DNA from: Podarcis gaigeae
Taxonomy: Eukaryota
DNA length: 64,000 bases
Assembly: GCA_964106915.2 (NCBI GenBank)
Contig: OZ066915.1
Direction: 5' to 3' (one strand)
Below the pieces are notes generated by a model. The model made no database searches, was not told the origin of the DNA, and saw only the letters and a list, made by a program, of their open reading frames with translations. The position numbers were made by a program, and so were the translations under genes. Below are positions 6,201-30,200 of the stretch, in pieces (the stretch's first letter is position 1; each line of letters starts with the position of its first letter).

Positions 6201-9200
6201 CAGATTCCTTAAACACCACAGAGAGGTTTGCAGTCTGAAATGTGAATAAAGGCGGAATTTTTCTATTAAGCACTGGTAGTAGACAACGGAGAAGATATTT
6301 GCTCAGAGTCAGTGCACAGCGTTTCCCCGTCTTATGCTTTGCTATCTAGTGTTGGGAATAAGGCCATGGCTAGACTTGAGAACAAAGGCGGCAGGATGAG
6401 ACAGTATGAGGTGATGGTTTTGCCAAACATCTATCTGCTCATCCTTCCTACCACCCACGCTCAACTGCTGGTAGCTACCTGAGGCTCAATGAAGGTCTGC
6501 CCCAAGTTGGCAGCCACAAAGTCCTGCATTGCATTGGTGACTTTGTCCCCTCGCAGGCAACGGAGGACCAGCAACTTCTGGAAGGCATCTAACTTGGCGT
6601 CCCACAGGCCAGGCAGATGCTCCCTGCAAGAGAGGAAAGGGCTGTGTCAGGTTTTCACATTTCACACTGAAAATGTAACAGGCATAGGGCAAGACGACAG
6701 GCTTCTCAGAGTGGATTTCGTGTGGTAACTATAATGGGATCAATCTTTGTGACAGATCACTTGATGGCTGTGCTCTAGCTCCACTGCTGGAGGCAATATG
6801 CCTCCATACACCAGATTCTAGGAATCGTAGGTGAGCAGAATGCTGTTACACTCCGGTCCTGCTCAGGAGTTTCCATAGCATCTGGTTGGCCACTGTGAGA
6901 ACAGGATGCTGGACTAGCTGGGCCTTTGGCCTGAGCCAGCAGGGCTCTTCTGATGTTTTTAAGGGGCTGGCAAGGTCAGTAACAAATCTCTAGCCATTTT
7001 CTGGGCAGAATTACCACTGGCAAGCAGTGGGGGTGAGGCATGGGGAAGGGGGGGGGGCACAGCCAAACAAAAAACAGTACAGGACCTACAACCCTACTGG
7101 AAACTGAAGAGGAAATGTCACCTGTGAGGCTCTGCGCTGTCAAAAATTGCTCGGAAACCATTCAGATTTGCCACAAAATCATCTGCAAAGCTGGAAAAAT
7201 TGTGTAGGTTGGTCAAGGCCAAGATATCATTCCATGCTCTTTCATATAACCATGCAGGAGCTGGATTATCCCGCATGGTCTTAACTGCACCACCAGAAAT
7301 TAGGTATCGCCATTCATCCTGAATGTAAGAAAATCACAAATAATAAGACAGGAAGAATTAGACTTTCTGCTTGTGAAATTTCCTTCCATGAACCATGGCC
7401 AGAAGTGCCAATGTATGGAGGTGTTCACCTCTCTGGCCCACAGATGGCAGGCTTGTCAAAATGTTTGCAGACTCTTGACGAGGGACCAGTCAGCATGATA
7501 AATTGTCGGGCAGGGCAACCATCACTTCCATAAGGTATGTTTGTGAGGACAGTTCTGCACTGGTCACAGGTTTAAGAACAAAGGTATGTAATACTGCTCC
7601 CCCTTCCCAGAAACGTAACTTTCGGTGACACTACTTAAGTTTGTTAAGGATGCTGGGATTTGTAGTTCTACAGTTCCCAGTATTCTTTTTTTTGGGGGGG
7701 GGGGGAGGCCATGTGCTTTAAATGTGTGTTGGATGTGCCTTAGTGTATGGAATGGATTTGCCCCAGGAATATATGTCTGGAAGCACACCGTAGCAGTAGC
7801 TCTACAAGTTGCAACTGCTGTGGGGAACACAAACATTACATGGATGTTTTCTGCAGCAAACAGATGCTCCTCTGCTAAGGTAAAGGGAACTGGGTGCTTG
7901 TCACTTCTCTTTTCCATCTGAAACAGCCTCCCATATCCCTTCCCAAGGGTCACCCAGCCACCTCACCCCTTATAATAGATTTTCAGGAAGTTCATGGAGC
8001 TGCAGAGGGAAAGGGAAGGTGGGAATGCCTCATTCCATGAATTCTGTTCCATTCACAGAAAGAGAGATAGGATCAAGTTAGCAGGTNNNNNNNNNNNNNN
8101 NNNNNNNNNNNNNNNNNNNNNNNNNNNNNNNNNNNNNNNNNNNNNNNNNNNNNNNNNNNNNNNNNNNNNNNNNNNNNNNNNNNNNNNNNNNNNNNNNNNN
8201 NNNNNNNNNNNNNNNNNNNNNNNNNNNNNNNNNNNCAGATGCCTGTATCTGAACATTCTGTGCCACCAGTGAAACACAGGGTGGTGCCTTCAACCAATTT
8301 TAATAGGTGATGCTGCATTTTATCAATGGGCTATGCTTTAAGACATGTTTGTTGTACACTGTGTAGTTACATGCTTTGAAAAGCAGTCTCATAGCAGTTC
8401 ATGATTGTACAGATACTTGCTTAAAAGGGTCCGAGGACATAGTTTCACTGACCATGTCTATTTTCCCTTCATTCATCATGATCCGGATACAGACCAGAAA
8501 CGCAAACATGAGCTTATGCTTCTCAAAGAGGCTCCGACACACATTGCTGTAGAGGCTGAAGGTGAGGTACTTATTGATATTTGCTATTCGCTTCTTTAGG
8601 GTGTCTGAAAATAAGAAATCACAAAATAACAATGCAGACAGTGAGTAGGAGGAAATGACCCACAATATTGCCATACACTTTAGCACTGTGTTCATTATTC
8701 AAGAGGACTTAGGCCCGCACTAGTGAGCCAGAAAAACTTCTCATGCCTCCTGTCTGGTGCTGGCATACTGAACACTGCCTGAAGAAATAAAAACTGCTAG
8801 GATGGCTGAAGGCCATTTAAAAGCCAAGTGCTTTGCACTGATAAGGATACCAAGTTAAAAGCTAGTGCTTTAAAATAATTCTCTCATACAGAGCTTGACA
8901 GTAGAACAATTTAGATATGGTGAGGGAAGGGCAGACGGCATCAGGAACACCCGCATCCTTGGATTACATACTAGTTCTACAACATAAATGGCTGAATGTT
9001 GCTACCAGCATCACCTGAAATGATGACCATCTATAGATTCAGTAAAGTGGATTTTTTTCCTGAACCCCATACAGAAATAATCTAGGATCAAGCTGAAGTT
9101 CATTGTGATTCTGTAACTCTGGCAATAAACTAGTAGGGGCTGATTATGATCCATAATGAGTAGATGTACTCTTAAAAGGTTTGTGTGCCAATTTTATTCC

Positions 9201-12200
9201 AGCACTGAGCTGTACTGGATACTGAAGTGCAAGGATGAACAAATCTCCAGTCCTTCAAAAGTCTGAACATCTTCCAGAAGAACTGCAAGACCACCTATTA
9301 ATTTTGGGATGGCTTGTAACAAACATAACGGGATATAGCATTTGGGATACCAATACATTACATTTTTACTTAGCTGAGGTTACTATCCTAAGGCTAACAA
9401 CTTTACTATGCAAACATAATACTTTAGAAACTCTGAACATTCGGACTATGAAATTGTTGTTTTAGTGTTGATCAGAGTATGGCCCCTTCCAACTCTACAA
9501 TTCTATAGTTCTAAGTGAGACACTGAGGGGTTTGGGATGGGATTCTCTTCACACACAGCACATTATCAGAGGTACCTGCTCTCTCAGCATTTGCAATTCC
9601 TGTCAGAAATATGTTGAGGAACCATTCCAATGAATACTGGTACATGGGATCGACATTGGCCAAGTCTGAGACACAGAAGAAGAGGATCTGGGTGCGGACA
9701 GCCACAGGCACATACTCCAGCCGGGTGATGTCAATATCCTTCTCTGTCTGTTCAGCTACCTTCACTTTGGCCTGCAGGAGATTCAAGACCGAGACAAAAT
9801 GCACCATTCCATATTAAGTCAAAACAAACAGCTGACAGGGTGTGGTGGAAGTGCAGATTAGTCACCAACCTGAATCTCCCCTGCTTTTAGCTTGGATGCC
9901 TCCAACACTTTGATAAGCTCCAGATCATCAACAGGGTTCCCCTCAGAAGAGCTCAAGCGGTACAGGATCTGATCTTCTATCTCCTTCAGCTCCTGTCGCA
10001 TCTTGGCATTACTGACAATCAATTGGTTCTTGGCCTCTTCCAAGTCAGGCCGCTCTTCAGCTACCACTTGGCCTAGCAGCTGATCCTCTAAGCCACTGTA
10101 AAACGAATAGAAGTAACCACACATATTGCAATTTGAACAACAAAGGGTCATATTGAATCTTCATGTTCTATTAGAGCTTGGTTTCAGACTTTCCCCAGCT
10201 GCAAACTGCCTGCCTAGCAGGGCTCAAATTCACAGTTCCATCTATCAAGATTGATGGGATGCAACCTCTGTCTCAGAACTACAGGTGGGGAAAAGCAGCT
10301 GACATGATTAAGCCCAAGGAGAGTATCAGAACACTTGCTGGCATCAGCAATGAAAAGTAGAGCTGGTGTTACCTGGGGGATAGGGTGAAGTTAATCAGCG
10401 TAAGCTTGGTGGACAGCTCTGGTGTGTAGTGGGGATTAGGTAGGTTGGTGGTGATGTACATCTTGAAGTCCTCATGGTATGGAATGATTGTGTCTCCCAG
10501 CTTCAGCACTGTGCTACCTTGCTGCTTATAGGTCTGTATATCAGGAAAACAAGTAAAAAGAAGAAGCAACAAACATCTGTGCAAACAAAAGAGACACAAT
10601 TCTGTAACACATAGTAACACAACTTTCATAGCCAACTCTGTCCAACAAATTCATGTTATTGAGAGTGTACAGATAGTGTGGCTTGGGATGGGCAAAAGTA
10701 GGTGGTAATGGTGAGGCCAGAATGGAATTTTGCAGAATTTCTGGGCTAGTATCAGTCTACAACCAGAAGACAAATTTGCACGTCTCGGCATCAAAGCTGC
10801 TTCCTAGTCCCAGTTGGTCCAGCACATCAACACATATTAACAAGCATTTCTCTTTCCTTCATTTTATGGATGATAACAGGGGAACAGCAGCTAATAGAGG
10901 CAAAACCAGCTGTCAGGGGAAGAAGTAAGCCTTCTCCACCCAAAGCTTCTCAACTACAAATCTGCACCTTTGTTACCCCAATTCACACAGAAGATGCCAG
11001 TTCTTAAAGATGAAAGGCATTCCAACATTAGAGTAGCCCCTTCACTCAGTGCTGACAGCAGAAAAGTTGTCAGTGCCTGCTAATACTTTATCAAACAGGC
11101 ATAGACAAATCAGAGGCACCTGTTTTAGCAGGACAGGTTCAAGGGCCGGATCCAGTTCTTCACCAACATTCTCCAGTAGGAACGGCTTTCCAAAACGAAT
11201 GGCATTCTCCAAGCTGCGCAGGAAGTCCCGATCACTGAGCTTAGATGTATCTAACCCACTATCTCTCTCCTGAAAAACAGAGAAGGTGCAGACAAACTCA
11301 GTACAGGTGATAAGTGGGGTCCTGCTTGTGTGAATGTGGAACAACAAATGGAAAATTGATTAAAAGAAACATGGGGTGGGGGTGGAGAAATCTTGAGTAT
11401 AAGAATCCACTTTGTTAATAAATTGAACACAGCGAACACCCAGACCTGCGACTCTCCAATGTGTGAAAGCAACCAAAAGGAACACTTGTGTGATAACCAC
11501 TTTCACTGCTCCTATTTCTTCATGATAACAGTTCAATGCCCCGTTCTGCTTTTGCTTTTTGATCACGGTTTTTCACATTGCAAAATCAATACTCAGAATT
11601 GGCAGCTGAACCTTGAAACCCATGAAGTTTGGTTTTCTGCTTTAAAATTCTTAAACCATATTTCCATATTTCCATATTTCCTGAAGGAAAGAGCAGATTT
11701 TTAAAAAAATAGTAATAATAAGATAATCAGAAGATTCAGATAACAAGGGTGTATATTTTCTTACATTTGCATTTATAGTTTGCAAACTGGGAATTTTAAC
11801 AGTGAGGTGTAAACAACATGCCTTTATAGGAACAGAACTTCAATCTCAGAGATAGGATGGGGTATCAAATCCCCTGGTACCACTGAACTGGATTAATGAC
11901 TTTGCAGAAGCAGAAGCCCTTACCAAGTTTTTTATCCATTTGTTGGCTTGTCCCTGGGGGTCTATGAAGAGAGTCCAGCGCTGAGAGAACTGAGTTATCA
12001 TTCCATTCTCCACAGACAAGGTATCATTGGGTAGACCTGCAATCTGAATAAGAACACATCATTTTAACAGTAAACACAAATTCTGCGTACTCTGCCCCTA
12101 AACAAAACTGCACTGGCAATAACATACCGTATTTTTCGCCCTATAGGACGCACCATCCCATAAGGCGCACCTAGTTTTTTGGGGGGGAAATAAAGGGGGG

Positions 12201-15200: not shown

Positions 15201-18200
15201 ACTGGAAACAGGGGAAATGACATCACACAGAGCTCTCTCTCCACCAGTTACATTCCTATGGTCTAAGACTGCCCATTTAGTAATTAATAGCTCTGTGGCC
15301 ATTGGCCCCCAGACTTACTAATTAACAAGAATATGCACTGTTAGATTTTGACTGCAACTATCCCAGTTTCAACCCTTGTATGTTTGACAATTCAGCACTA
15401 TGCCACTATGGTTTAGCTACAATGTGGGATGCAGCAAGAATTTGACCCAGAAACATATTTTCTCTTGGGGAACTTATTCTGAACCAGAACTAAATCAAGA
15501 CACTGATCAGGTATTCTGGAAAATAAAATATTTTTCCTACTCACTGTAAATGGGCCCATGTATGCTATAAAGCCAGCTGAAGCCAACACATCCCCTGCAA
15601 TGTTGTTAATCATATAATCCAGGTTCTGGACTGTTTCCTGCCAGCGTATCCTTTCATCAGCCAGGCCATTAATCAACTGGAGAAAAGAAAGATTGACATT
15701 AGTTTCTTTCTCAAAGAAGCTCCACCAAACCCCAGCAGAAAATGCCACAGTAAAACAGTGACTGGGACTGCCCACCTAAGCCCAACTACTGATATATGGG
15801 AAATGAAAAAGCAGATTTGACTCCCTGCTGTGATTAAGGCCACAAAATTACTATCGATGAGGATTTGGCAAACTTGCTTGGGCGGACATAATTGTCAGAA
15901 GAAATTGGTGGTTTTACTAGTATCCCCCCCCCCCCGCCCGAGTTTCTGGATTGCAACTTGGAGATTGTGTCTGTCTCTTTAACAGCTCTGCTGATGTGAA
16001 ACAAAAGAAAGCTGTTTCTTCACCCCCAGTTCTTTCCTTCAGCCTCTGCTCCTGTCTTTCCATCTTGCCCCAACAAGTGGTAGGTGAGGCCTGGTGAAGG
16101 GAATGGGGCAGGAGAATCTACAGTTGTGGCCGTGGCCCTTACCTTGTCAGCCCGACCCAGTCTCTGCTCACACTGATCACACTTCATCTCGAGTTCCTCT
16201 TTTGTGGCCAGAGTACCTTGGTATTTGGCCTGCAGGTTGGCAATGCCATCTTCCACCTCTCGAAGACGCTCCTTGGCCTCATCCAGAATCTTTTGTGTGG
16301 CCTGGAGGTCTTCTTCAGCCTCCCTCAAGGCTTGCTGTGGAGAGAGAGAAATTTTTGTGAATGTCAAGTTCTGCCATAATTCCAAGGAAAATAATTGTGG
16401 TTAGCAGCAATGGGGGTGGGCAGAGGCTCCATTCAGTTTTAGGTGTACATGCAATAACTTTGAAGAAGCCCTGCTGTAGTTCTTACTCGTTTTGGCTCCA
16501 CAGCTTTTGCCACGAAGTGATACTTATGCATGGCCCTGACCCACTGGCAGATAGATGTGCAGGCTTTGGACACTTTGGCTATGGCTGCTGGCTGAAATTC
16601 TTCACTGTCGATATATGGCTGGATCAACTTAATTACTGAATCTGCAATGTTATCCTGAAAGGGTTAAAGAAGAGATTATGAGTGCTGGGAGCATCAAGGT
16701 CTGAGACATCAGGGGAGTCAGCTGTGAGGCAGAACCAAATCCCATGGCAAAAATTCATCAGTGCGGCAGGAAAAGTATAAACTCCCAATTGTGCACTCCC
16801 TTCTCTGTTTCTAGCTTCAAGCCAAGCTTAGGCATTGCTCATTCATTCCTTCAAGATGGCTTTTATTACTGCAAGGCAATGTGTTTGGTTTGTGGGCAAT
16901 ACAGGTTATCATTACCTCCGCGAAAAGTGGAAGGAAAGGAAACCATTTATTTTCATCTGCTGGTTCAGGCCAAAATCAAAAGGTGAGTAGGCCAAGGAGC
17001 GTCCAGTGACTAATCACAGTCAAAAGGACAGCTGAATATTCCTCGCATCACATCCCTTAATGGGGAACATCATCACTGACATTTGCTTCATAGCCAGCTT
17101 GTGACTACAGATAGATGCATGGTCCATGTTTTACGCAACCTTAACCTGGGAATAAATCGAGCCATTTCCTCCCAAAATTGGGAAGTGCAATGAACTTGAC
17201 CCCCTTTCCCCATTTCACAGCCAGGGATTGCTTGCACACCTCCCAGATCCCTGACTGTCAAATGATAGCTTTGTGTGGCTAAGAGAACTCTCCCCTGGCT
17301 AAGGGAAGCATCTGGGGCAAGCAGGCTTCACCTTGTAAAACCCTTTAGCCTGAAGGATTCTCTGCAGATATAAGGTGTTTATTCCCACCAGCAGTTTCAC
17401 TGGGTGTGGCTTCTTTCAACTCCTCTGTTTAACTGAATTGTAGTTTAATTGTTACATTTAAGGTACTATAAAGGGGCTGTACCTCCTAAGAAATGTGGGG
17501 TGGTTGGTCTCCAACAGGGGCTATACCTGTGAAAATTAATCTTAGGGGTAGGAGACTACTGGAGCAACAGGGTCCCCTGTGAGTAGTGGCATTTCCGCCT
17601 TGCCCCTACATAAAATCATTTTTTCAGGTGCATCTTTTCAAAGCAGCCCTGATGGCCATCAATGGAGACGACTGCTTTGAAAGATTTCACTGTCACCAAA
17701 TGCTTCCTTGCCAGGAAAAGCCCTTGCCGAACTTCTCCAGGCTGTGTTTTTGGGATTTGTGGCATGGGTGGGAGGATATTAAACCAGGAGTTCTTGTCTC
17801 CCTTGGATTTTAATCTACTCTGAGGATTTGCAAGGATGGCTGCTTCTCTGAAACGCACACCATGAGACCCTGGAGCTCATATCCTGGCTTGAGCCAAAAG
17901 AAAATAAAGCGGGGAAATGGTAGATGCCTCCTCCCTCCCTCCCTGCCAAATAGGTGAGGTTGTGAGGGGAGGAAAAAGGGGCATCCTAGAAATCCCTACC
18001 CAGAGATGTAGCATATTGGATGTATTATTTCTCTGAAATATACGGCCATTAACTAATTAAATTGAGCTTTACTAGCATGAACCAAAAAGCTATGAGAGAA
18101 AAGCATTTGATTGACTAGATGGCAAGCTTAAGTCCCACAATTATGCCAGCTACACTAGTACTTAGGCTTGCCCTTTTTCTTTTTTACTAGCCCTTGCTCC

Positions 18201-21200
18201 TGAGCTTTTAATAACAACTCCCTCTGTAGACTTTAGCAGAGGAAAAGTTTATTCCCATGCCAGGAAGTGCTTCACCTGCTGTTGCTTCCAGATCAAGCTG
18301 TTGCTAAAAGCACAGGAGAAGCCAAGGCCGTTTTATTCTGGTCAGTTGGATGGGAGGAGCATGGAAGAGAGAGAATGGCTGGCTGACTGACTGAATGACT
18401 GACTACTATGGTACTTACCTTATCATATTTAAACAAGCTTTCAAGAAATTTCCCTGGGTCCTGAAGAAGGACTTTGCCGGGTTCCCAATAGTCATCTAAC
18501 TTGGAACCTAGTTTCTCTCCTGCCACTTTCTTGGGCTTGATACCCTTCATAATGCAGACAGCTTCAATCACCATCTTCACTCCAAGTGGAGGACGCTGCA
18601 TTGCTCGCACCTAGTTGGAAACATGGGGGGAAGAAGTGGATCAGTAATTCAGTATAATGTCACATCTGCTGGATGGCATTCCTAACTATCCTGGACTTCG
18701 GTACTGAGGCATGAAATAAATAAAAGAGCACCACCATTCATAAAGCTGAGTGCCCTTTCTCTGATTGTTTATAATACGCTATCCATGCACACAGCACTTT
18801 ACAAACAAAGAAATGACAGGTCCCTGCCCCAAAGGGGCTTACTGTCTACAAACTGACACAAGGAAGACAACAAAGGAAGGGGGTAAAAGGGGCAAGAATA
18901 TATTACTTCAGTGACAATTATTTAAGCTTAGTTACAATGGGGGCATGAGGACTAGCGGGGTTCTGCTAAAGGCTTCATGGAAAATTAGGAGGGGTTTGAA
19001 GATAGGATGGCATCATGGGGACATTCTGGGAGGCTGCAAAGAGCAAAAGACCTTTGTGCAGCAGAGGGTGGCAGAGAGGGACAAGTGAAGATTACAGGCA
19101 GGAATGCATCAGGATATATGAATGAAGAGGGGTAAGGGACCATGTGGATAACTGAATAGGTAAGAAGTCTAGGAACTTAAGGAAGTGTGTCATATGGCCA
19201 GCATTATAAGAGAGTTGAATGCTTTTTGACAATCAAGTGCTGGACTGAGGTGAGGGGAACAAAAATGAGGCAACAATGCTGAGAAAAGATTGCAGTGATT
19301 AAGATGCAAGGTGACCAGAGCCTGAATCAGCTTTTGCCAAGATGTCAGAAAGAAAAGGACCAAGGGAAAGAGTGAGAGTGTGTTGTACCTTTTCAACAGG
19401 GTAGGTGGTGGTGTTATCAATGAATACAGATAGTGTGAGGGAGTTGGGACAAATGATGAGAAATTTGCTATTGGATGTAATGAATTTGAGACAACAATGG
19501 AACTACCAAAAAGAAATAACCAGTGAAGTACTTGTACATGTGACATCAGATGAAAGGGGGAAATTTTAGGATAGCGACGGAGAACTGGGCATTAGCAGCA
19601 TACAGGTGGTACTTAAAGCCACTCTACAATGTGTGTAGAGGAAGAACAGCAGAAAGGCAAAAATAGGAACCACAACACAGAAGGAAAGTAGGAGAAGAGC
19701 TTTCTTGTATGAAAATGCTGAAAGAGCAATTAGGCATGTAGGAAAAGAATTCATGGAGGGCAGAATCATGGAAACTTAGGGCAAAAGGGGAGCCAAGCAA
19801 GAGAAAGTGATTAATTTGAAAGGGAGAATAGAGGTCAAGGGGAGTGAGGACTAAATAGAGACCTTTGAATTTGGTAGGGAGGAGGTGGTCAGTGATTTTG
19901 GTAGGTACAGTTGAAGAGGTGAAAAGATTTGCAGGAGAGAAAACTGAGATACCAGGAGTACACAGCATACTCCAGTAGTCTGCAAATTGCAGCTAGATGC
20001 GAAATTGGACAAGAGATTTTTTTTTAGTGGAAAGGATAGAATCCAAAGTAACACTGAGTGAACATTCTGTCAGCTTAAGGAATTCTACTTGTGCAGTTGA
20101 ATTTTTTCTCCTCCCTCCCACACACCCCTTAAATATATTTTAGGGGTTTCCCAGCCCCATGAAGCAGAATTGGAAGGGGCATGGAGTGTGCGCGGGGAGA
20201 AGGGGAAAAGTTCCACTGCACAAGCAGACAGGATGGGCTTGCTGAATACTACCCAGTGGCATGTTTAAATGCAGTCATTTTGAAGGTGTGGTTCTTATTT
20301 ATTGGGAGGAGATGATAGCTGCCCTGAATATGGCTGCTTCTTTAGGTTTGAAACACCACCTACCTAGGTTTGATTTACACATGCCTAGTGACATGAGGAA
20401 AAAGGAAGACTGGGTTTATAAACCTTTCATAGTGTAGAAAAGAGAATTTCAGGACATGAAGTGCAGTAAGTGTCCAAATCCTAGGGTGGCCAGTTGAAAA
20501 AGACAAAGCTCCCAAACCTTTAACAGCTATGTAGAAGAGGGATGTTAGCAGCTGCAGCACATAATATAAGCAACACCAGCTGAAAGTCCTCCTTCTACAT
20601 AACTATTAAAGGGGCCCAGTCTTCTTTTTCAGCAGGTAACCCTTTCAAATTCTCTCCTCTGCATATCCATTAAGGATGAAGGGCCCTGACCTTCTTTGTT
20701 GAGCTCAAGTATGAGGACCCCTTCATGGATCACTGCCTTGCCGTGGCGAAGGGGCTTGAAGAACTCAGAGAAGCTATGAACTATGCCGAGCAGGGCACCC
20801 AAGATGAACAGGTCATAGTGGAGAGTTTTGACCAAACGTGATCCACCTGGAGGAGGAACCGGCAAGCCACTCCAGTATCCCTGCCAAGCAAAACCCCATG
20901 GACAAAGACAACTGCTGGAGGAGACTCTTGAGAGTCCCATGGACTGCAAGAAGATCAAACCTCTCCATACTGAAGGAAATCAACCCTGAGTACTCACTGG
21001 AAGGACAGATTGTGAAGCTGAGGCTCCAGTACTTTGGCCACCTCATGAGAAGAGAAGACTCCCTGGAGAAGACCCTGATGTTGGGAAAGATGGAGGGCAC
21101 AAGGAGAAGGGGGCGACAGAGGACGAGATGGTTGGATAGTGTTTTCGAGGCTACCAGCATGAGTTTGACCAAACTGTGGGAGGCAGTGGAGGACAGAGGT

Positions 21201-24200
21201 GTCTGGCGTTCTCTGTTCCATGGGGTCACGAAGAGTCGGACACGACTAAACGACTAAACAACAACAACAACATGAGGAACCTTTGGCTGTTCAGATGATG
21301 CTGAACTACAGCTCCCATCAGCCCCAGCAAGTATGGCCAATGGTTTCTCACATCTGGTCTAGATCACTTAGAGTTGCCTAATTTATGGCACAATCTTAAC
21401 CATGTCTACTCAGATTTAAGCCCTGTTGAATTCCATGGGGCTTAAAAAGGTAAAGGTAAAGGTACCCCTGCCCGTACGAGCCAGTCTTGACAGACTCTGG
21501 GGTTGTGCGCCCATCTCACTTAAGAGGCCAGGGGCCAGCGCTGTCCGGAGACACTTCTGGGTCACGTGGCCAGCGTGACATCGCTGCTCTGGCGAGCCAG
21601 AGCCGCACACGGAAACGCCGTTTACCTTCCCGCTGGTAAGCGGTCCCTATTTATCTACTTGCACCCGGAGGTGCTTTCGAACTGCTAGGTTGGCAGGCGC
21701 TGGGACCGAGCAGCGGGAGCGCACCCCGCCACAGGGATTCGAACCGCCGACCTTTCGATCGGCAAGTCCTAGGCGCTGAGGCTTTAACCCACAGCGCCAC
21801 CTGCGTCCGCCTCCATGGGGCTTACTCCCAGGTAATTGAGGTCAGGACAGTGAGCCTTAGTCACTCAAAGCTTTATGAGTGAACAATATTGTGCTTGGCA
21901 TTATATGAAAACTGTCTCTGTTGTCAGATCTTTGAAGATGGTTTCATGTTTGCAAGTTGTCACTCAATGTCAGAACCACACTGAATGAGAAAAGAACATT
22001 TGTGCTTGAACTTTCCCCAGTTTAGATTATTGTCATACTACCTCTGTGTCAATGTATGTATGTATGTGTACTTGGAAGCTCCACTAAATTTACTTTCGGG
22101 TAAGTGTGCATTCAATTATGGATAAAACCACCTGATGCAAATAATGGCTGAAGTGTCCCAGTGTTTGCCATCAGATGGCTAGGTAGGTATGCATGCAAGA
22201 GAAGAATCTCAAGAATGTCTTTTTGGAATGCAATGGGATGAGCTCCCCTATTATGTATCAGTAGGGTTACAGGCTGGGAAAGTACTGAGCATACTAGAGC
22301 TGATGGGCTTTCATTGCATTGCCACCCGTGAGCAGAAATTGTACAGACAGGATGGCAGTGATGATCAATACAAAAGGCAGCTGCCGGATATAGTACAATA
22401 CTGGATAGAAACTAATCATACCAATTTGTCAATTGGCTTCCGATATAGCTTTAACACAGCAGTTTGCAATTAGGACAATTAGCAGCTGCTAATACTTGAT
22501 CTTTGTGCTGTGAAAAGTTCCCCCTGCTGGTTTCTGCAGAAATAGGTATAAGAGAACTCCAGGCTACAGTTTGCTTCCAGGGTTACAGGGGTAAGTTACA
22601 AAGAGTGGCTAAAAAAAGACTACATGCATTGTTGTTTTGCTACTGCACCAGTGGGGTTTTGATCACAGAATTGCTGAGTTGGAAAGGACCCCGAGGGTCA
22701 TTTAGTCCAACATCCTCCAATGATGTTGATGCAAATAAAAATGCAAAGTAAATCACTTGGCTCACAGGATTGCTCCAGGGTGGTTGTGGTCTGTGTGTGA
22801 AGAAGCTGAGGGATAGTATCCAAAGGGCAGAATAAGTATTTATGCAGGGCCCTGAAACTTTTCCCTGACCATGAGCAATCCTGCTTGATCCTCCTTTATA
22901 TTATAAAATTTAACCAATTATTATCTGCATGCTTACAAGATAAAAGCTATTTTAACACCCAAATGCATGAAGAAAGTTAACACTAAAATTCTCAAGGTGT
23001 GGAATTCAGATAACCGATACTAGGGGTGTGCATCAGCTCTGTAGTTCCCAAATTAATGAGGCAAATAGGGGTGATTTGGGTAAGGTTTTCACATGCTTGA
23101 ATCAGACTGACTGGAGACTCCTTAAAGTCCCAAGTTCCTCTGTAGAATTGAGTGCCCCCATGCTGCTTTTCAAAATGAGTCCTGCATTCTTTCCCAGGGG
23201 AAAGGTTCTGTATCCCCCAACGATCTCTCTGTGAGTTGGAAGGAGAAGCCTGTCTACTTACTTGCGTGGGCTCTTTGCTGGGTAACAGGCTCTTTGTACA
23301 CCCCCCCACCCCACCCCCGGAATGTATCTACATACAATTTGGCAGACTTAATCAACCCTAGTAGGGCTCCTATATCTGCAAATTTCATCAAATTCGGTGA
23401 AATGAGAAAAAATTATAGCCACGTTTAGATTTTCCATTACTGAATGTAGGAAAAGCAGAGCTTTGTTTTTAGTAGAATGAATTTGATCCCCCCCCCCCAA
23501 AATGAGTCAAGCTGGAAAGATGGGGTGACTCCAAAAAAGACTGGGCTGCTTCCCAAAGCGGAAGATACAAGTCAAAATCTTATGGTTGGTGCACACCTCT
23601 ATTAAACGTCTTACTTGTGCAATGATGGCATAGGTAGGCACAAGGGAGACCTCCCTGCATTTTGATAAGCAAATTGCATCTGCTCCCTCCAGGGTTCGAA
23701 GAACCAGAACATGCTCTCACGGAGACGCTCCAGAGTTTTCCTCCTGGATACAGTTGACAGAGGAAGTGAGTTTGTGGAGACCCTGAAATTTGTTTATCCC
23801 AAGGCAGATGATCTTCAGGAGAAAGACTTTGACTGGCTCTTTGATTGTCCTGAGACAGAACAGTTTCTTGAGTCTTTCTGCAACATAGTGGGGGAGGAGA
23901 ATGTATCCAGTTCTACAGAACTGGAGGCCTATGAGAAACTGGTCATTTCCGGGAAGCCTGTTCTGGAAGGTGAAGCACTGGAACAGGTGTTGAAGACCTG
24001 CCGCCAAGCCTCTCAGCTCAGGTGTGCTATGCAGGAGAATGACACCTTGCCTCTCGAGACACTTGAACAAGAGGTGCAGATGCTGAAGAGCCAATGCGCC
24101 TGTCGGGTAATGCGGCGCACCAAGCTCCAAATTCGTCTAGCCAGCTTGAAGCGGGAGCTCTGTCATTCAGCTGAGAAGAAAGAGAAAGCAAGCCGGGAGC

Positions 24201-27200
24201 TGAAGAAGGCACACCTGCGGCTAGAGCCAGAGAACTTTCAGAGCAATGATGCTCTCAGCCAAGCCTGTAAGAAAGTAAAGGAGCTGATGCAATGGCACAG
24301 GAAGCCTGCAAGCAAGCGGCAGGAAGCCTCAATGGCAGCAGCGGACCTGGAACGTTGCCTTGAATTGGAAGAAAAAGTCTCAAAGGTTTTATTGGGATTC
24401 TCACCAAAGGTCTTGCCAGATGTTGTCAGCGATGTGGAAGCTGATCAAACAGTTCTGGTGAAAAGGGGGCAGGGAGACTCTTGGGGAAAACTGGATACAG
24501 GGTCTATGGAAAGACGAGCTCAGAAAGTGCTGCTAGATAGTAAGAGTACAATCTGCAGTCATGATTCTGAAGGTCACAAAACGACATATGACATGCTGAA
24601 AAGCCAAGTTCTCCCCAAGGGGCAGCTGGGCAATAAGAACGAGCCAGAGTTTACTTGTAAAGCTCTGCTGCAAGAAACGGACCGAATGGAAAGTGAGAAC
24701 TTCAGAACTGTTCAGGATGGTTGTCAAGGAGGGTTGAAGATGCGGGGAGAAGCTGCTGAAATGGAGCATGCCAAAGATGACAAGCTGAGCAGCTATCAGG
24801 AAGAACTGGAGCGCATGGCATTGGCTTACATGTGCAGTCAGGGAAAGGCACTTGTGACCTCTGCAAACATTAAAGGAATTTCATATACCTTGAAATGGGC
24901 AGGAAAGGCCCTCAAGGCTGCTAAAGGGAACAAGGTAGGTCACTAGCTTCCTGGCTTAAACAAACAGGGTTTAGTAAATGACAGTACTGTAAGCACTTTT
25001 AATACAATAGTCTCTGCAACACAGAAATGCATTGAGAGAGAGAGATACGAATAATAAAAGAGTGAGACTCTAATTCACCTGTTGCACTTGGTGAATGGGT
25101 TTGAACCACTAGACATTTTTCATCTGTAGTGAATGCACTCTATTTGTCACGCAAGCCCCTGCTTGGCTCTGCATTCATCAGAGCTGGTGTTTGATTCTGT
25201 CCACCTCTGACTGTATCCATCCACCAAGAGCCAACCCGTGTACATTAAAATTTTGTGGAAATAGAGGACATTCCTGAAGGCTGAAACTGGCAGGTTTGGG
25301 ATAAGGAACATGCTTCTGGCGAAGAGGAAACAAATGAGTGGTGGTGGTGGTGAAAACAGTTTCTCTAGAGCAACAAAGAAATCCCTTGCTGGGGATGAAT
25401 GAAAATAAAAGAAACATTAGGAAGTGGGGCAGGGAAGGAGAGAAAAGTAAAAGCAACATGCTGTTTTTCACTTAAAGTCTGTATCCAACATGTTCTCAAC
25501 CATGAAGTAAAAAAACTAATAGATTGGGGTGACAGCAAAAATCCGTTTGCAATGTTCATATTTAAGTGACATCTTATTTATATGTAAGCTGTATATTATG
25601 TATTAACGATGCTGCAAACACAGACAAAAGTAATACTTTTGCCCCATGTTTTGAATAAATTTTTATCTCCCACTTTATGGACTCTTGACTGCTAAGCTTT
25701 ATAAAGAAAGCTGATATAATCATTGGATATCAGAAAATCAAAACTTAACAGGTCCTCTGGACCAATCTAGTCCTAAGCTATTTGTATTGTGTTCTGCATT
25801 ATTCTCAGTTTTCTGAGTTACTGGGTTAGGAGAATACTTGCCAACAAAACTGGTGGTTTTTCTTGCAAAGTTCGTAGAGGCCTTCAAGAACTGCAGGGGA
25901 ATGTGAAATTTAATGTCCTTCTCTTCTACAGGTGGAGGAAGAGAAAGGAGAACTGTATCTTCGTAGAGCCACTTTCCAGGAGCAGTTGTGTATCCTCCAA
26001 AGGGAGGTTAGACAGGCAAAAACCAAAAAACTTGTCCCTTTGCTCCAGACCAGTGCCAGCCTCCTTCGCTTGCCTGTAGTATGTGGAGAACTCACTTTGG
26101 AAACCAGGAGACTTGGTCATCTTGTATCAATGCAAGAACAAGCTGCTGACCAAATGATGGTCCAGTGGAGCCATTTGGAGCTGCTGTGGCTCTTGCTGAT
26201 GCATGAGCAGAAGAATCTGCAACAGATGAAGACCCAACTGGAGGGGATGGTGGCTACCTCGAATGAATCACATGCTAAATTACAGGAATGGCAAGCCTGC
26301 TTTGAGGATTCAAGATTCTCCATTAAGCAATGCCCGCGGACTCTGATAGACCCCAGTGATCTCACCATGTTAAGGTAAAGATCAGAAGAGCTATGGCAGG
26401 GGAAAGGTATCAAATGGCTGCAAGTGTTAGAAACAAGGAAATACTTCCTTAGAGTAGAAATGGGGCTCGTTAGAAAACAAAAATAAGCTGGTATGTGACT
26501 AAAATGAAGCATAACCTATTGAAGATAAAATACGCTAGGACCTTCTCGTCCATTTCTTTTATGCAGCACACTTGAATGAATGTTGGAAAAGAGCCATAGT
26601 CATTAATGCAGGACATTTAAACCACTTTGAGATGAATTAACAGATAAACTCCTAATTGTTAATTCAGCTAAATAAGCATTAAGTCTAACTCGGGTTGAGT
26701 CTTTCAAATACTCAAAATTCTCTCACAGCAGCAGATCAACAAGAAACGAGATAGCATCCCAGCACAATTCTATAGTCACTCTAGTCATCTATAGCGCAGC
26801 CATTTTCAAAGTATATGAATCTCTCGCTTTTCTCACTGGTACAAGGCCAAGAACTGTTATGGATACAATTTCTCAAAGCTTCTAACTGATGGATGCGTCT
26901 TATGTATTCCTTTCCTCCTTAGGCTGTGGGAGATGCTAAACAGGCACAGTCAAGATAAGCAACTCTTCCATGCCTATGGGGCCTTGGCAGGCTGGGGCTC
27001 CCGGTTATGCCAGGAGCTCAGGATGCTCAAAGTGCAGCTGGCAACGCCACACTCTCAGCTTCCTAAACTGGAGTCTGACAATGAGGTGCTTCACTGTTTG
27101 ATGTATGGTGACTGCAACCAGCTAATGCTTCGTGCTCAGGTAAGCAAAAGCTGTAGCCCATCATGTGTGTGAAACTTCTTTTTCTTGCTATATTATCTAT

Positions 27201-30200
27201 TAATAATCACAAGAATAGACCAAATTAACGGCACACAATGATCTTTGCTTTTGCTACACCATTAAGTGTTGTACTCTTGGGACTCCTGGTCCTCCTTAAG
27301 TAGCAAACTTCCCTCCCTGTGAAACTTCTAAATGATGAAAAATTGGAGAAATATGTGCTGCTGCTTCTGAACCCCTATTTGTTTTGACACCTGTTTTCTA
27401 CAGGGACTAGAAGAACCTCTGGAGCAGCTTTACACCACACAAGCCAAACTCTACCAAATGCTAATGGACACCTTGAGTGATGTGAAGGCCAAGCAAAAAT
27501 CCCTGCGGAGTCACTTTCAGCAAACTGAGCGCAGCCTCTACATGCATTTCTTCACTAACCCAGAACAGCTGAAGGAGCTGGTGCAAGATGCTGAGAAACA
27601 GACCCTGGCATTTTCTTAGGTGTCGGTATAGTCACATGAGTGTAGTTCAGTAGAAAATAGTCCTCCAGCTTGCTTGAAGGTACTCACATCTTATCGTCAT
27701 CTAGACTGAGTGGAAAGTCTCCTTAGGGAGAATCCTGTTTGTGAAAGCTTACATTGCTATGTTCTCTTTGTAAAATTGACAGATTTGGACCTACCGGTAA
27801 TTCCATATACAGTGTTTCTTCCCTACAATGACTTGGTAAAAAAGGCTCTTAAACTATAGTCTGTTTTTTCCCTTCAGAGTCTGAGTAAAGTGATGGAAGA
27901 AGTGATGGATGGGTGGGCTGAGATGTTGGTTAAAACTAAAAGCTACAGTGCATACTTCTAAGATGGGGCGCTGCCCTTTTCTGCTTGCCTGCATATTTAT
28001 TGTCTACCTATTTTTCTATCTCAATTACTGATGTTATTCAAAAAAAACTGTGATGAAAGAAGAACATGGCTGCACAATCAAGAATGTTTTGTTTAATGGT
28101 CAGGGTCCATTTTTTGCTGTCTTAAATTGTGGTAATACAAGAAGCTCCATGGTTGAAAATATAATGTGTACCATTTTCAGGCATGTTGCTTGTTTTATAT
28201 TGAAAACAACTCACTGAAATATGCTAATAAAAGTAATGTTCACTTTAATTTTAACTATTTGTTTAGGCAAAGGGCTATACCAACTAGCCTAGAAACATGC
28301 TGATGTTGCAATATAATTATTGAAACACATTCTCCCTTTACCTTTCAAATAGGATATTGTGACAGGCATTGCAGAATCCTGGTGGAAGCTGGTCATAATC
28401 ACTTATTATAGAAGCCTATTTTTAGATAATTTCATTGGCAACAGGATCTACACATTTTATCATAAGTTACAATATAATTTTGTTTCCAGAATTCTGAAGT
28501 AAGGTTATGGAGGGGCTCTCTTTTCACACACCAGTAGCTCAATATAACTGCATTTTCCACTATGCATTTAAGACATACTAAAATATATTGCACATATCTG
28601 AATATACCTATACATTGCTTTTGGTGACTTGCTGCTGCCACCTGACAATACAGATGAGCTACTTGCCTGGGTGGGCACCAACTAACAATAAGTCTTCACA
28701 TGTGTAGCAAAAATACACATCTAGAGCATTAAAAAAATCTCCATATGACTCTACTCTTAAGATCATCTCTAGGCACTGACTACAACATCAGTCAAATTGA
28801 CAGCTGGCTAAATAAACCCAACTCTTGGAACAGTCCTTGAACAGGGGGAACATAATTGACAATAGGCCTTCTAAATTTTCTGGAAGTGCCAAATAATAGT
28901 AGGTAGTAACCCAGCATGTCAGTGAACAGAAAACGAGACAAGGATCTGTAGCACTAATTTTCTGCTTGTATTCAGCAGCTGTCAATGTTCTTTCCAGCTA
29001 GGAAGCTTTGCAGTGGCTCAATAATCTATTCAAAAGGGAGTTGGCCTTTGAATTCAATAGGAGTAACTTCTGAAATGACACAAACAGGATTGTGCTGTGT
29101 GATGTGAACTATGCTTTTACTTCCCTTACTCTTCTCATCTAGTGAAATGAAGCCAGAGGGTAACATTACTATAGAACCATTCGAGTCCAAAGAGTTAAGG
29201 TGGTAGAGGGATGCTGATACCCATCGTTTCAGCCTCTCCGGCAGGTGCAGACTGCTTTTCATCCCTCCTCATCAGATTTATCATTTGATGAGTGAGGAAC
29301 AATGTTTGATCTGTGTATATGCATCTGCATTTCTGTGTATGTGATGGCTGGGATGTGGGTGAGAGTGTGTGCACGCTGGATATGACCCCTCTGCCAGTGT
29401 GCAGTACCCAAAGGCACTACATACCTTTGGCTGAAAAGGATTAGATTCTTCTTCTTCAGGGACAGCCATCAAAGGGAATAAGCTGCTACAACTCACTTAC
29501 AAGGTAAACAAGTTTGAAAATCAGAATGGGTGGGGTGTTTAGGGGGTGTTACTATTGAACCTGTATCCATGATAAAGCACAGACAGTATAACTAGTGTTC
29601 TTGTTGAAAGTATTGTTAAAAGCTATTCTTTCTCAACTCTGTTACCTCTGTAACATCATTTTTGTTGAGGTTCCTCAAGCTGGCAAGGGCAGCATCCAGG
29701 GCAGGCAGGGCTTCTGCCAGGTCCTTCTGTGCGTCATCAGCAATAGCCTGAGCGGTCTGAGCTTTGACTTTGGCTTTCATTTCCTCTGCCTGCACAGCAT
29801 TCCGTGTTTCTTCTGCAACAGCTGTGTCTACCTGCAGCAGCACAAAGGTATTTGGAATCATGAATGCCTTCAGGACTGGCTAAATTAGAAGCACCTTTTC
29901 TGCATCAGTCAGAGACCCAGTCTGCCTGCCATGGTAAACCATAGTTAACGGCTAGCCCTAAATACATGGCTCTCACTAGCGCACGGGGGGTGTGTGTGTG
30001 TGTGTGAAACGGACAAACCACAATAGTTGTTTTAGGATTACATCTGAATACAGGATTGTGGCTTGTTTCCCTCCCCACCCCAGCCCCGAAAAAAAGCCCC
30101 AAGCCCACATTAAGCCAAAGGAAAACTTTGACAACAGATCAATGTTTGTTTGGAGTAAAGCAAACCATGAGCACTAATTCAGATGAAACTTTAAGTCAGG

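Follow-up and report, generated by a model that had tools for sequence, protein, structure and literature searches.

A HAUS3-like gene nested in a DNAH1 intron of the lizard Podarcis gaigeae and its apparent history among lobe-finned vertebrates

How did a gene resembling an augmin subunit come to lie antisense inside an intron of a dynein heavy chain gene, and is it the lizard's ordinary copy of that subunit or another one? The question is raised by a stretch of 64,000 nucleotides (nt) from Podarcis gaigeae (NCBI GenBank assembly GCA_964106915.2, contig OZ066915.1), hereafter the window, in which an earlier note had read a HAUS3 paralogue on the plus strand within an intron of DNAH1 on the minus strand. 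Augmin brings gamma-tubulin ring complexes to existing microtubules, and within its tetramer III HAUS3 is the partner of HAUS5, the two being bundled with HAUS1 and HAUS4. To our knowledge, augmin has been regarded as an invariable machine of eight subunits, and every solved structure of it contains the canonical HAUS3. We consider it highly probable, from sequence comparison, that the window gene is the Podarcis orthologue of HAUS3L, a real, selected and protein-coding paralogue of augmin HAUS3. Public annotation already includes the gene, and its family is a known one. What appears to be undescribed in the literature searched is its history, namely that of an ancient HAUS3 paralogue carried by lungfish, amphibians, a monotreme and sauropsids, and fixed in a DNAH1 intron since the early amniotes.

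A four-exon gene in an intron of DNAH1

The nested gene consists of four plus-strand coding exons with GT-AG splice sites read in the sequence (1224 + 443 + 217 + 216 = 2100 nt), which join into 699 codons and a stop with intron phases 0, 2, 0, and each exon is open in its frame in the list of open reading frames (ORFs). Exon 1 (23693-24934, coding from 23711 to 24934) begins translation at the ATG at 23711, provides 408 codons and ends in phase 0 at AAG/gtaggt (24934/24935). Exon 2 (25932-26374, 443 nt) runs from ctacag/G to AAG/gtaaag and ends in phase 2, exon 3 (26923-27139, 217 nt) runs from cttag/G to CAG/gtaagc and ends in phase 0, and exon 4 (27404-27619) starts after ctacag/G and closes with the TAG stop at 27617-27619. 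The ATG is located 18 nt past a possible acceptor, ccctccag/G (23692/23693), and a non-coding 5' exon may lie upstream of it. A putative 3' untranslated region, read from sequence only, extends over 27620-28231 and ends at the AATAAA of 28226-28231. The window exons were searched one by one, and the full length was represented by the public protein of Podarcis raffonei (P0001; NCBI "HAUS augmin-like complex subunit 3", 699 amino acids (aa)), which is the best homologue with 98% identity over exon 1. In a tblastn search against the window, residues 1-409, 408-556, 554-628 and 628-699 of P0001 fall precisely on the four exons, at 98, 96, 99 and 99% identity respectively. Splice sites, frames and tblastn all agree on the 699-aa gene that the earlier note described, and the four-exon gene is confirmed as a real observation, far above chance.

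The whole gene is enclosed in a minus-strand intron at 18611-29645, both ends of which were read in the sequence (donor GAG/gtaaca at 29646/29645, acceptor ctag/GTGCGA at 18611/18610). On the lower side it is bounded by a microtubule-binding-domain exon (18407-18610, minus strand, lower end approximate), and on the upper side by the exon for the first strand of the stalk coiled coil, CC1 (29646-29820, minus strand, upper end approximate), which matches positions 52-110 of the Pfam MT domain (E 4e-5). The exon ending at 18610 fits DNAH1 chains in the PDB (8I3J, 9FQR, 8J07) with E values of 1e-30 to 1e-32, as against 1e-12 for DNAH7, and the host is therefore DNAH1. Other minus-strand exons of the window encode AAA_8 and AAA_6 domains (Pfam). 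Dynein exons detected on this strand span 15.4 kb to 58 kb, thus most of the window is inside DNAH1, and probably all of it. The placement within DNAH1 given earlier therefore stands, with the microtubule-binding and stalk exons on either side of the intron.

Two HAUS3 clades and the age of the nesting

The similarity to HAUS3 from the N- to the C-terminus is borne out along the solved protein. Exon 1 matches the Pfam family HAUS-augmin3 (PF14932) with 113 bits against a cut-off of 29.4, over profile positions 1-257 of 260, and human HAUS3 (7SQK_C) with E 7.5e-33 over residues 4-217 and again over residues 257-298; between these two stretches, approximately 125 query residues are unmatched in the comparison with human and Xenopus HAUS3. 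In the PDB search exon 2 corresponds to HAUS3 residues 313-446 (E 1.4e-8), exon 3 weakly to residues 451-524 (E 0.35-0.75), and exon 4 to residues 534-594 of the human protein, its best E value being 4.7e-7 on residues 530-591 of the Xenopus chain. As exons 1 to 4 match successive segments, the order of HAUS3 is kept end to end. The 98% identical P0001 also carries precomputed matches to PF27044 and PF27045, the HAUS3_CC and HAUS3_C regions. An AlphaFold2 model of P0001 built on a 40-sequence alignment is all-helical with a mean predicted local distance difference test (pLDDT) score of 63.5, and the strong Foldseek matches of this model are augmin chains only (8at3_B, augmin, 2e-17; 7sqk_C, HAUS3, 4e-15; approximately 690 columns), the next match having an E value of 0.03.

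An exhaustive homologue search with P0001 gave 108 representatives, and in trees rooted on amphioxus and molluscs, the more careful of which was made with IQ-TREE, vertebrate HAUS3 proteins split into two clades, A (canonical) and B. Clade A (support 94/79 with elephant shark, 99/98 for bony vertebrates) contains sturgeon, teleosts, mammals, birds, turtle and a squamate group, as well as one copy each from lungfish, caecilian and frogs, and the solved Xenopus and human HAUS3 chains belong to it. Clade B (100/99) contains the other lungfish, caecilian and frog copies together with salamanders, echidna and all of the approximately 700-aa sauropsid proteins, including those of Podarcis. Each clade mirrors the species tree, and the window gene lies in clade B, outside the canonical clade. 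The clade-A gene of the bird Cariama (P0251) adjoins a gene of the DNA polymerase A family (DNA_pol_A domain), that is, POLN. Both copies were found in Cariama (P0251/P0046), hoatzin (P0271/P0079), Rana (P0329/P0328), Rhinatrema (P0078/P0081), Protopterus (P0084/P0088), Carettochelys (P0390/P0043) and Podarcis muralis (P0332/P0003), and according to the cluster names the pairs of Rhinatrema, Protopterus and Rana are on different chromosomes. In these homologue searches clade B was not seen in therians or ray-finned fishes. Its proteins are approximately 685-713 aa long in squamates, turtles, crocodilians and birds.

For the genus Podarcis itself the evidence comes from a 306-aa fragment (P0116), which corresponds to exon 1 on a genomic contig and was placed in tetrapod clade A. 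Used as a query, it retrieved P. muralis P0332 (UniProt A0A670IHE4, 476 aa, 67% identical) and a turtle clade-A isoform. In the careful tree P0332 joins the squamate fragments (100/99) and turtle (97/91) within clade A, and the other P. muralis protein, P0003, is grouped with P0001 in clade B; the genus therefore has both genes. The proposal of a second copy depended on there being another HAUS3, and one is present in this congener, apart from a clade B that is separated from the POLN-linked clade with support of 100/99. Two further searches added little, since a bird clade-A query (P0086) had only birds among its best 120 matches and was uninformative on reptiles, and blastn of locus L004 against the window and the other loci gave no matches. 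Shorter crocodile and tortoise UniProt "HAUS3" entries (approximately 541-589 aa) were considered as a possible second gene and rejected, being insert-skipping models of the clade-B locus.

Several public records of the family are irregular. Two partial "HAUS3" proteins of Crotalus adamanteus (P0074, P0075) are on two separate large contigs of one assembly, and a kakapo protein, judged by cluster names, is far less similar to the P0001 query than the other bird proteins. For the clade-B protein of the amphisbaenian Rhineura floridana (P0002) NCBI gives the name "ubiquitin carboxyl-terminal hydrolase BAP1 isoform X3", probably a mis-merged or mis-named model; in human, BAP1 adjoins DNAH1.

The structure of the two genes tells how the duplicate was formed. 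The coding sequence of the clade-A gene in Cariama (L006) is divided into exons of 308 codons, 437 nt, 229 nt and 279 nt (phases 0, 2, 0), and in the alignment each of its three introns coincides with its counterpart in the window gene, the first to within one column. Such shared positions and phases mean that the duplicate arose from DNA and not from mRNA, as had been supposed; a processed retrocopy was rejected on the same three introns. As for the age of the duplication, an approximately unbiased (AU) test (LG+G4, 34 rows), applied to a grouping chosen after the tree was seen, rejects a single clade of B and lobe-fin clade A with p 0.00016. Judged by this test, the split between A and B predates the divergence of ray-finned and lobe-finned fishes, and the copy is not a lineage-specific one.

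The nesting appears to be younger than the gene. In P. raffonei, ptarmigan, alligator and echidna the clade-B gene is antisense within the gene of a dynein heavy chain of approximately 4200 aa (4204 aa in echidna). In P. raffonei (L001), ptarmigan (L002) and alligator (L003) it is flanked by the same stalk and microtubule-binding exons as in the window, according to tblastn and the loci; in echidna (L005) the antisense nesting was read from the gene models. In the caecilian Rhinatrema bivittatum a compact clade-B gene of 4.7 kb (P0081) is found outside DNAH1, 1.5 kb upstream of a Notch-type gene on a chromosome of 45 Mb, and at the Rana and Protopterus clade-B loci no overlapping gene is called. 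The occupancy of this intron in other vertebrates, which the earlier note left to be checked, thus extends to ptarmigan and alligator, with echidna antisense in a dynein, and does not extend to caecilian and lungfish. Because it is found in sauropsids and echidna and not in caecilian or lungfish, the nesting would have arisen on the amniote stem, barring its loss in amphibians and lungfish.

Two of these loci have features of their own. In the ptarmigan Lagopus muta (L002, 10001-11770) the first clade-B intron seems to be very short or absent, exons 1 and 2 aligning in one stretch, and the gene begins approximately 500 bp from the DNAH1 microtubule-binding exon. In echidna (L005, approximately 9440-10000) the NCBI model P0091 (497 aa) begins too late, as an intact upstream frame that starts with a Met encodes the conserved N-terminal HAUS3 domain, and the echidna clade-B gene looks full-length from its sequence.

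Selection, rival explanations and a possible role

Substitutions between the window gene and its P. raffonei orthologue, summed exon by exon, amount to 13 non-synonymous (Nd) and 14 synonymous (Sd) differences, giving dN 0.0079, dS 0.032 and dN/dS 0.25, and this dS is similar to the intron divergence of the same pair (0.012-0.049). Together with intact orthologues across amniotes, the ratio between these two Podarcis species agrees with the earlier suggestion that the gene is under selection. At the same time clade B evolves quickly. In matched species pairs it is always more diverged than clade A, for example 51% (B) vs 67% (A) identity between Podarcis and turtle, and 29% (B) vs 47% (A) between lungfish and bird. 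Within one species the A and B proteins are 29-35% identical, and the lizard protein has 45% identity to clade A in the N-terminal domain and 21-36% elsewhere. The residues that are invariant across both clades (G18, P30, A32, L35, D41, W42, F52, C57) cluster in this N-terminal domain.

Amniote clade-B proteins carry an insert that neither canonical HAUS3 nor the clade-B proteins of non-amniotes possess. It is located in exon 1, at 24416-24793 on the plus strand of the window (residues approximately 236-361), and is approximately 100-125 aa long. In the alignment its blocks are confined to sauropsid clade B, and echidna (L005) has a counterpart with a short shared motif. The P0001 model predicts disorder for the insert, with pLDDT below 50 across residues 235-356, and the insert is the least conserved part of the protein, with 40% identity among squamates.

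Could the gene be the lizard's sole HAUS3, an orthologue relocated from POLN into DNAH1? It is true that NCBI gives P0001 of P. raffonei the name of HAUS3 and that the first homologue search gave a single match per squamate; however, P. muralis also has a clade-A protein, which the tree sets apart from P0001 and P0003 of clade B, and birds, frogs, caecilian and lungfish have both copies, which leaves this explanation very improbable. Equally remote is the reading of the gene as a duplicate or retrocopy in decay, with an open frame owed to chance or to faulty annotation. The rapid divergence would suit it, as would the shortened or insert-skipping state of some public models, but the frame of 699 codons is intact with canonical splice sites, full-length orthologues of approximately 685-713 aa are present in squamates, turtles, crocodilians and birds, the N-terminal frame is intact in echidna, dN/dS is 0.25, and the introns are common with the parent gene. 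Somewhat less improbable, although still unlikely, is that the protein has left augmin, keeping the HAUS3 fold for another role, for instance a ciliary or flagellar one that would suit its dynein host. Its low identity to clade A within species, its faster evolution, the new disordered insert of approximately 125 aa in amniotes and the retention within DNAH1 since the amniote ancestor are all points in favor of such a departure. On the other side, all three HAUS3 domains are present and collinear with solved HAUS3 over the full length, and the residues invariant in both clades sit in the N-terminal domain. The link with the host is moreover secondary, because DNAH1 does not house the clade-B gene of caecilian and lungfish, nor seemingly that of frog; there is no known expression link to DNAH1, and nothing in the data gathered shows any co-regulation of the two genes.

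We therefore return to a selected clade-B paralogue of augmin HAUS3 as the best explanation, and the points that weigh against it should be set out together. The dN/dS of 0.25 is based on 27 substitutions only. The canonical clade-A copy is established in the congener P. muralis, not in the genome of the window itself. Long clade-B branches may draw the clade towards the root, inflating the age of the split and biasing the AU test. The transcript ends of the nested gene are putative, and its 5' exon is a candidate. That chicken HAUS3L belongs to clade B we infer from its symbol and from there being exactly two clades in birds, and the assembly of HAUS3L with HAUS1, HAUS4 and HAUS5 is a prediction.

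What would a second HAUS3 do? Because the full domain set and the N-terminal domain are conserved, the most likely role is in HAUS3's own place: HAUS3L would sit beside HAUS5, HAUS1 and HAUS4 in tetramer III, and the resulting variant augmin would recruit gamma-tubulin ring complexes to spindle microtubules. We give about even chances to this replacement of HAUS3 in a variant complex. A tentative and rather doubtful further step is that the variant would work mainly in the germline, in the oocyte or in meiosis, a role hinted at by the fast evolution and by one chicken follicle data set. EIF4E1B and SPIRE1L are oocyte-expressed genes. Chicken HAUS3L is listed beside both of them in a follicle table, where it ranks within the ten strongest decreases in F6 vs small yellow follicles, with a log2 change of -6.1 (PMC7367319). 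In the literature searched there is no functional study of HAUS3L and nothing beyond this one chicken expression table (PMC7367319), and no HAUS3L structure was found. As a speculation that we hold to be unlikely as a whole, most non-therian lobe-finned vertebrates may have two augmin complexes, with HAUS3L in a germline variant, the insert serving as a regulatory or docking module, and the variant lost in therians.

Surroundings of the gene and comparison with known systems

The remainder of the host intron contains few recognizable features. A CpG-rich patch at 21400-21999 (G+C 0.53-0.59, CpG observed/expected approximately 0.8) is located 1.7-2.3 kb upstream of the ATG and may be a candidate promoter or 5' exon of the nested gene. 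A matching patch is found in the P. raffonei locus (L001, 7000-7600), and upstream of the clade-B gene in the alligator, echidna and ptarmigan loci it is absent. The remaining ORFs of the intron have no Pfam domain, and there are no tandem repeats. At 18001-20000, just inside the host intron, the plus strand is purine-rich (G/C skew 0.23, A/T skew 0.16), with no tandem repeats and no Pfam domain in the ORFs of this stretch. Elsewhere in the window, positions 8087-8235 are 149 N in a row.

The contribution of the locus is evolutionary and functional context, and not a new kind of system. A selected, fast-evolving second HAUS3 that extends from lungfish to birds and echidna, with no therian copy found, suggests that there are tissue-specific variants of augmin, and such variants would be beyond the reach of work on human and mouse cells. 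The nesting in turn offers a datable case of a gene held in one DNAH1 intron since the amniote ancestor.

Among known systems the closest is HAUS3L itself. The earlier note had allowed for an existing public model, and this is borne out by the P. raffonei "HAUS3" and by the chicken symbol HAUS3L (NCBI Gene 101751348); along with the sauropsid models named "HAUS3" or "uncharacterized LOC" (P0001-P0049), the window provides another species' copy of this gene. Canonical HAUS3 (7SQK chain C; Xenopus 8AT2 chain C; POLN-linked) has in common with HAUS3L the HAUS-augmin3, HAUS3_CC and HAUS3_C domains, an all-helical build with strongly alike N-terminal motifs, and four coding exons with the same intron positions and phases 0, 2, 0. 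Unlike canonical HAUS3, HAUS3L forms a separate clade (100/99) with 29-35% identity to it within species, evolves faster, has the extra disordered insert of approximately 125 aa in amniotes, and resides in a DNAH1 intron and not at the side of POLN. Antisense genes nested in the long introns of a host are a general class, and the present case is likewise a complete gene on the opposite strand of one intron that has long been kept there. Unlike the general class, it can be dated, since the nesting is found in echidna and sauropsids and not in caecilian and lungfish, nor seemingly in frog.

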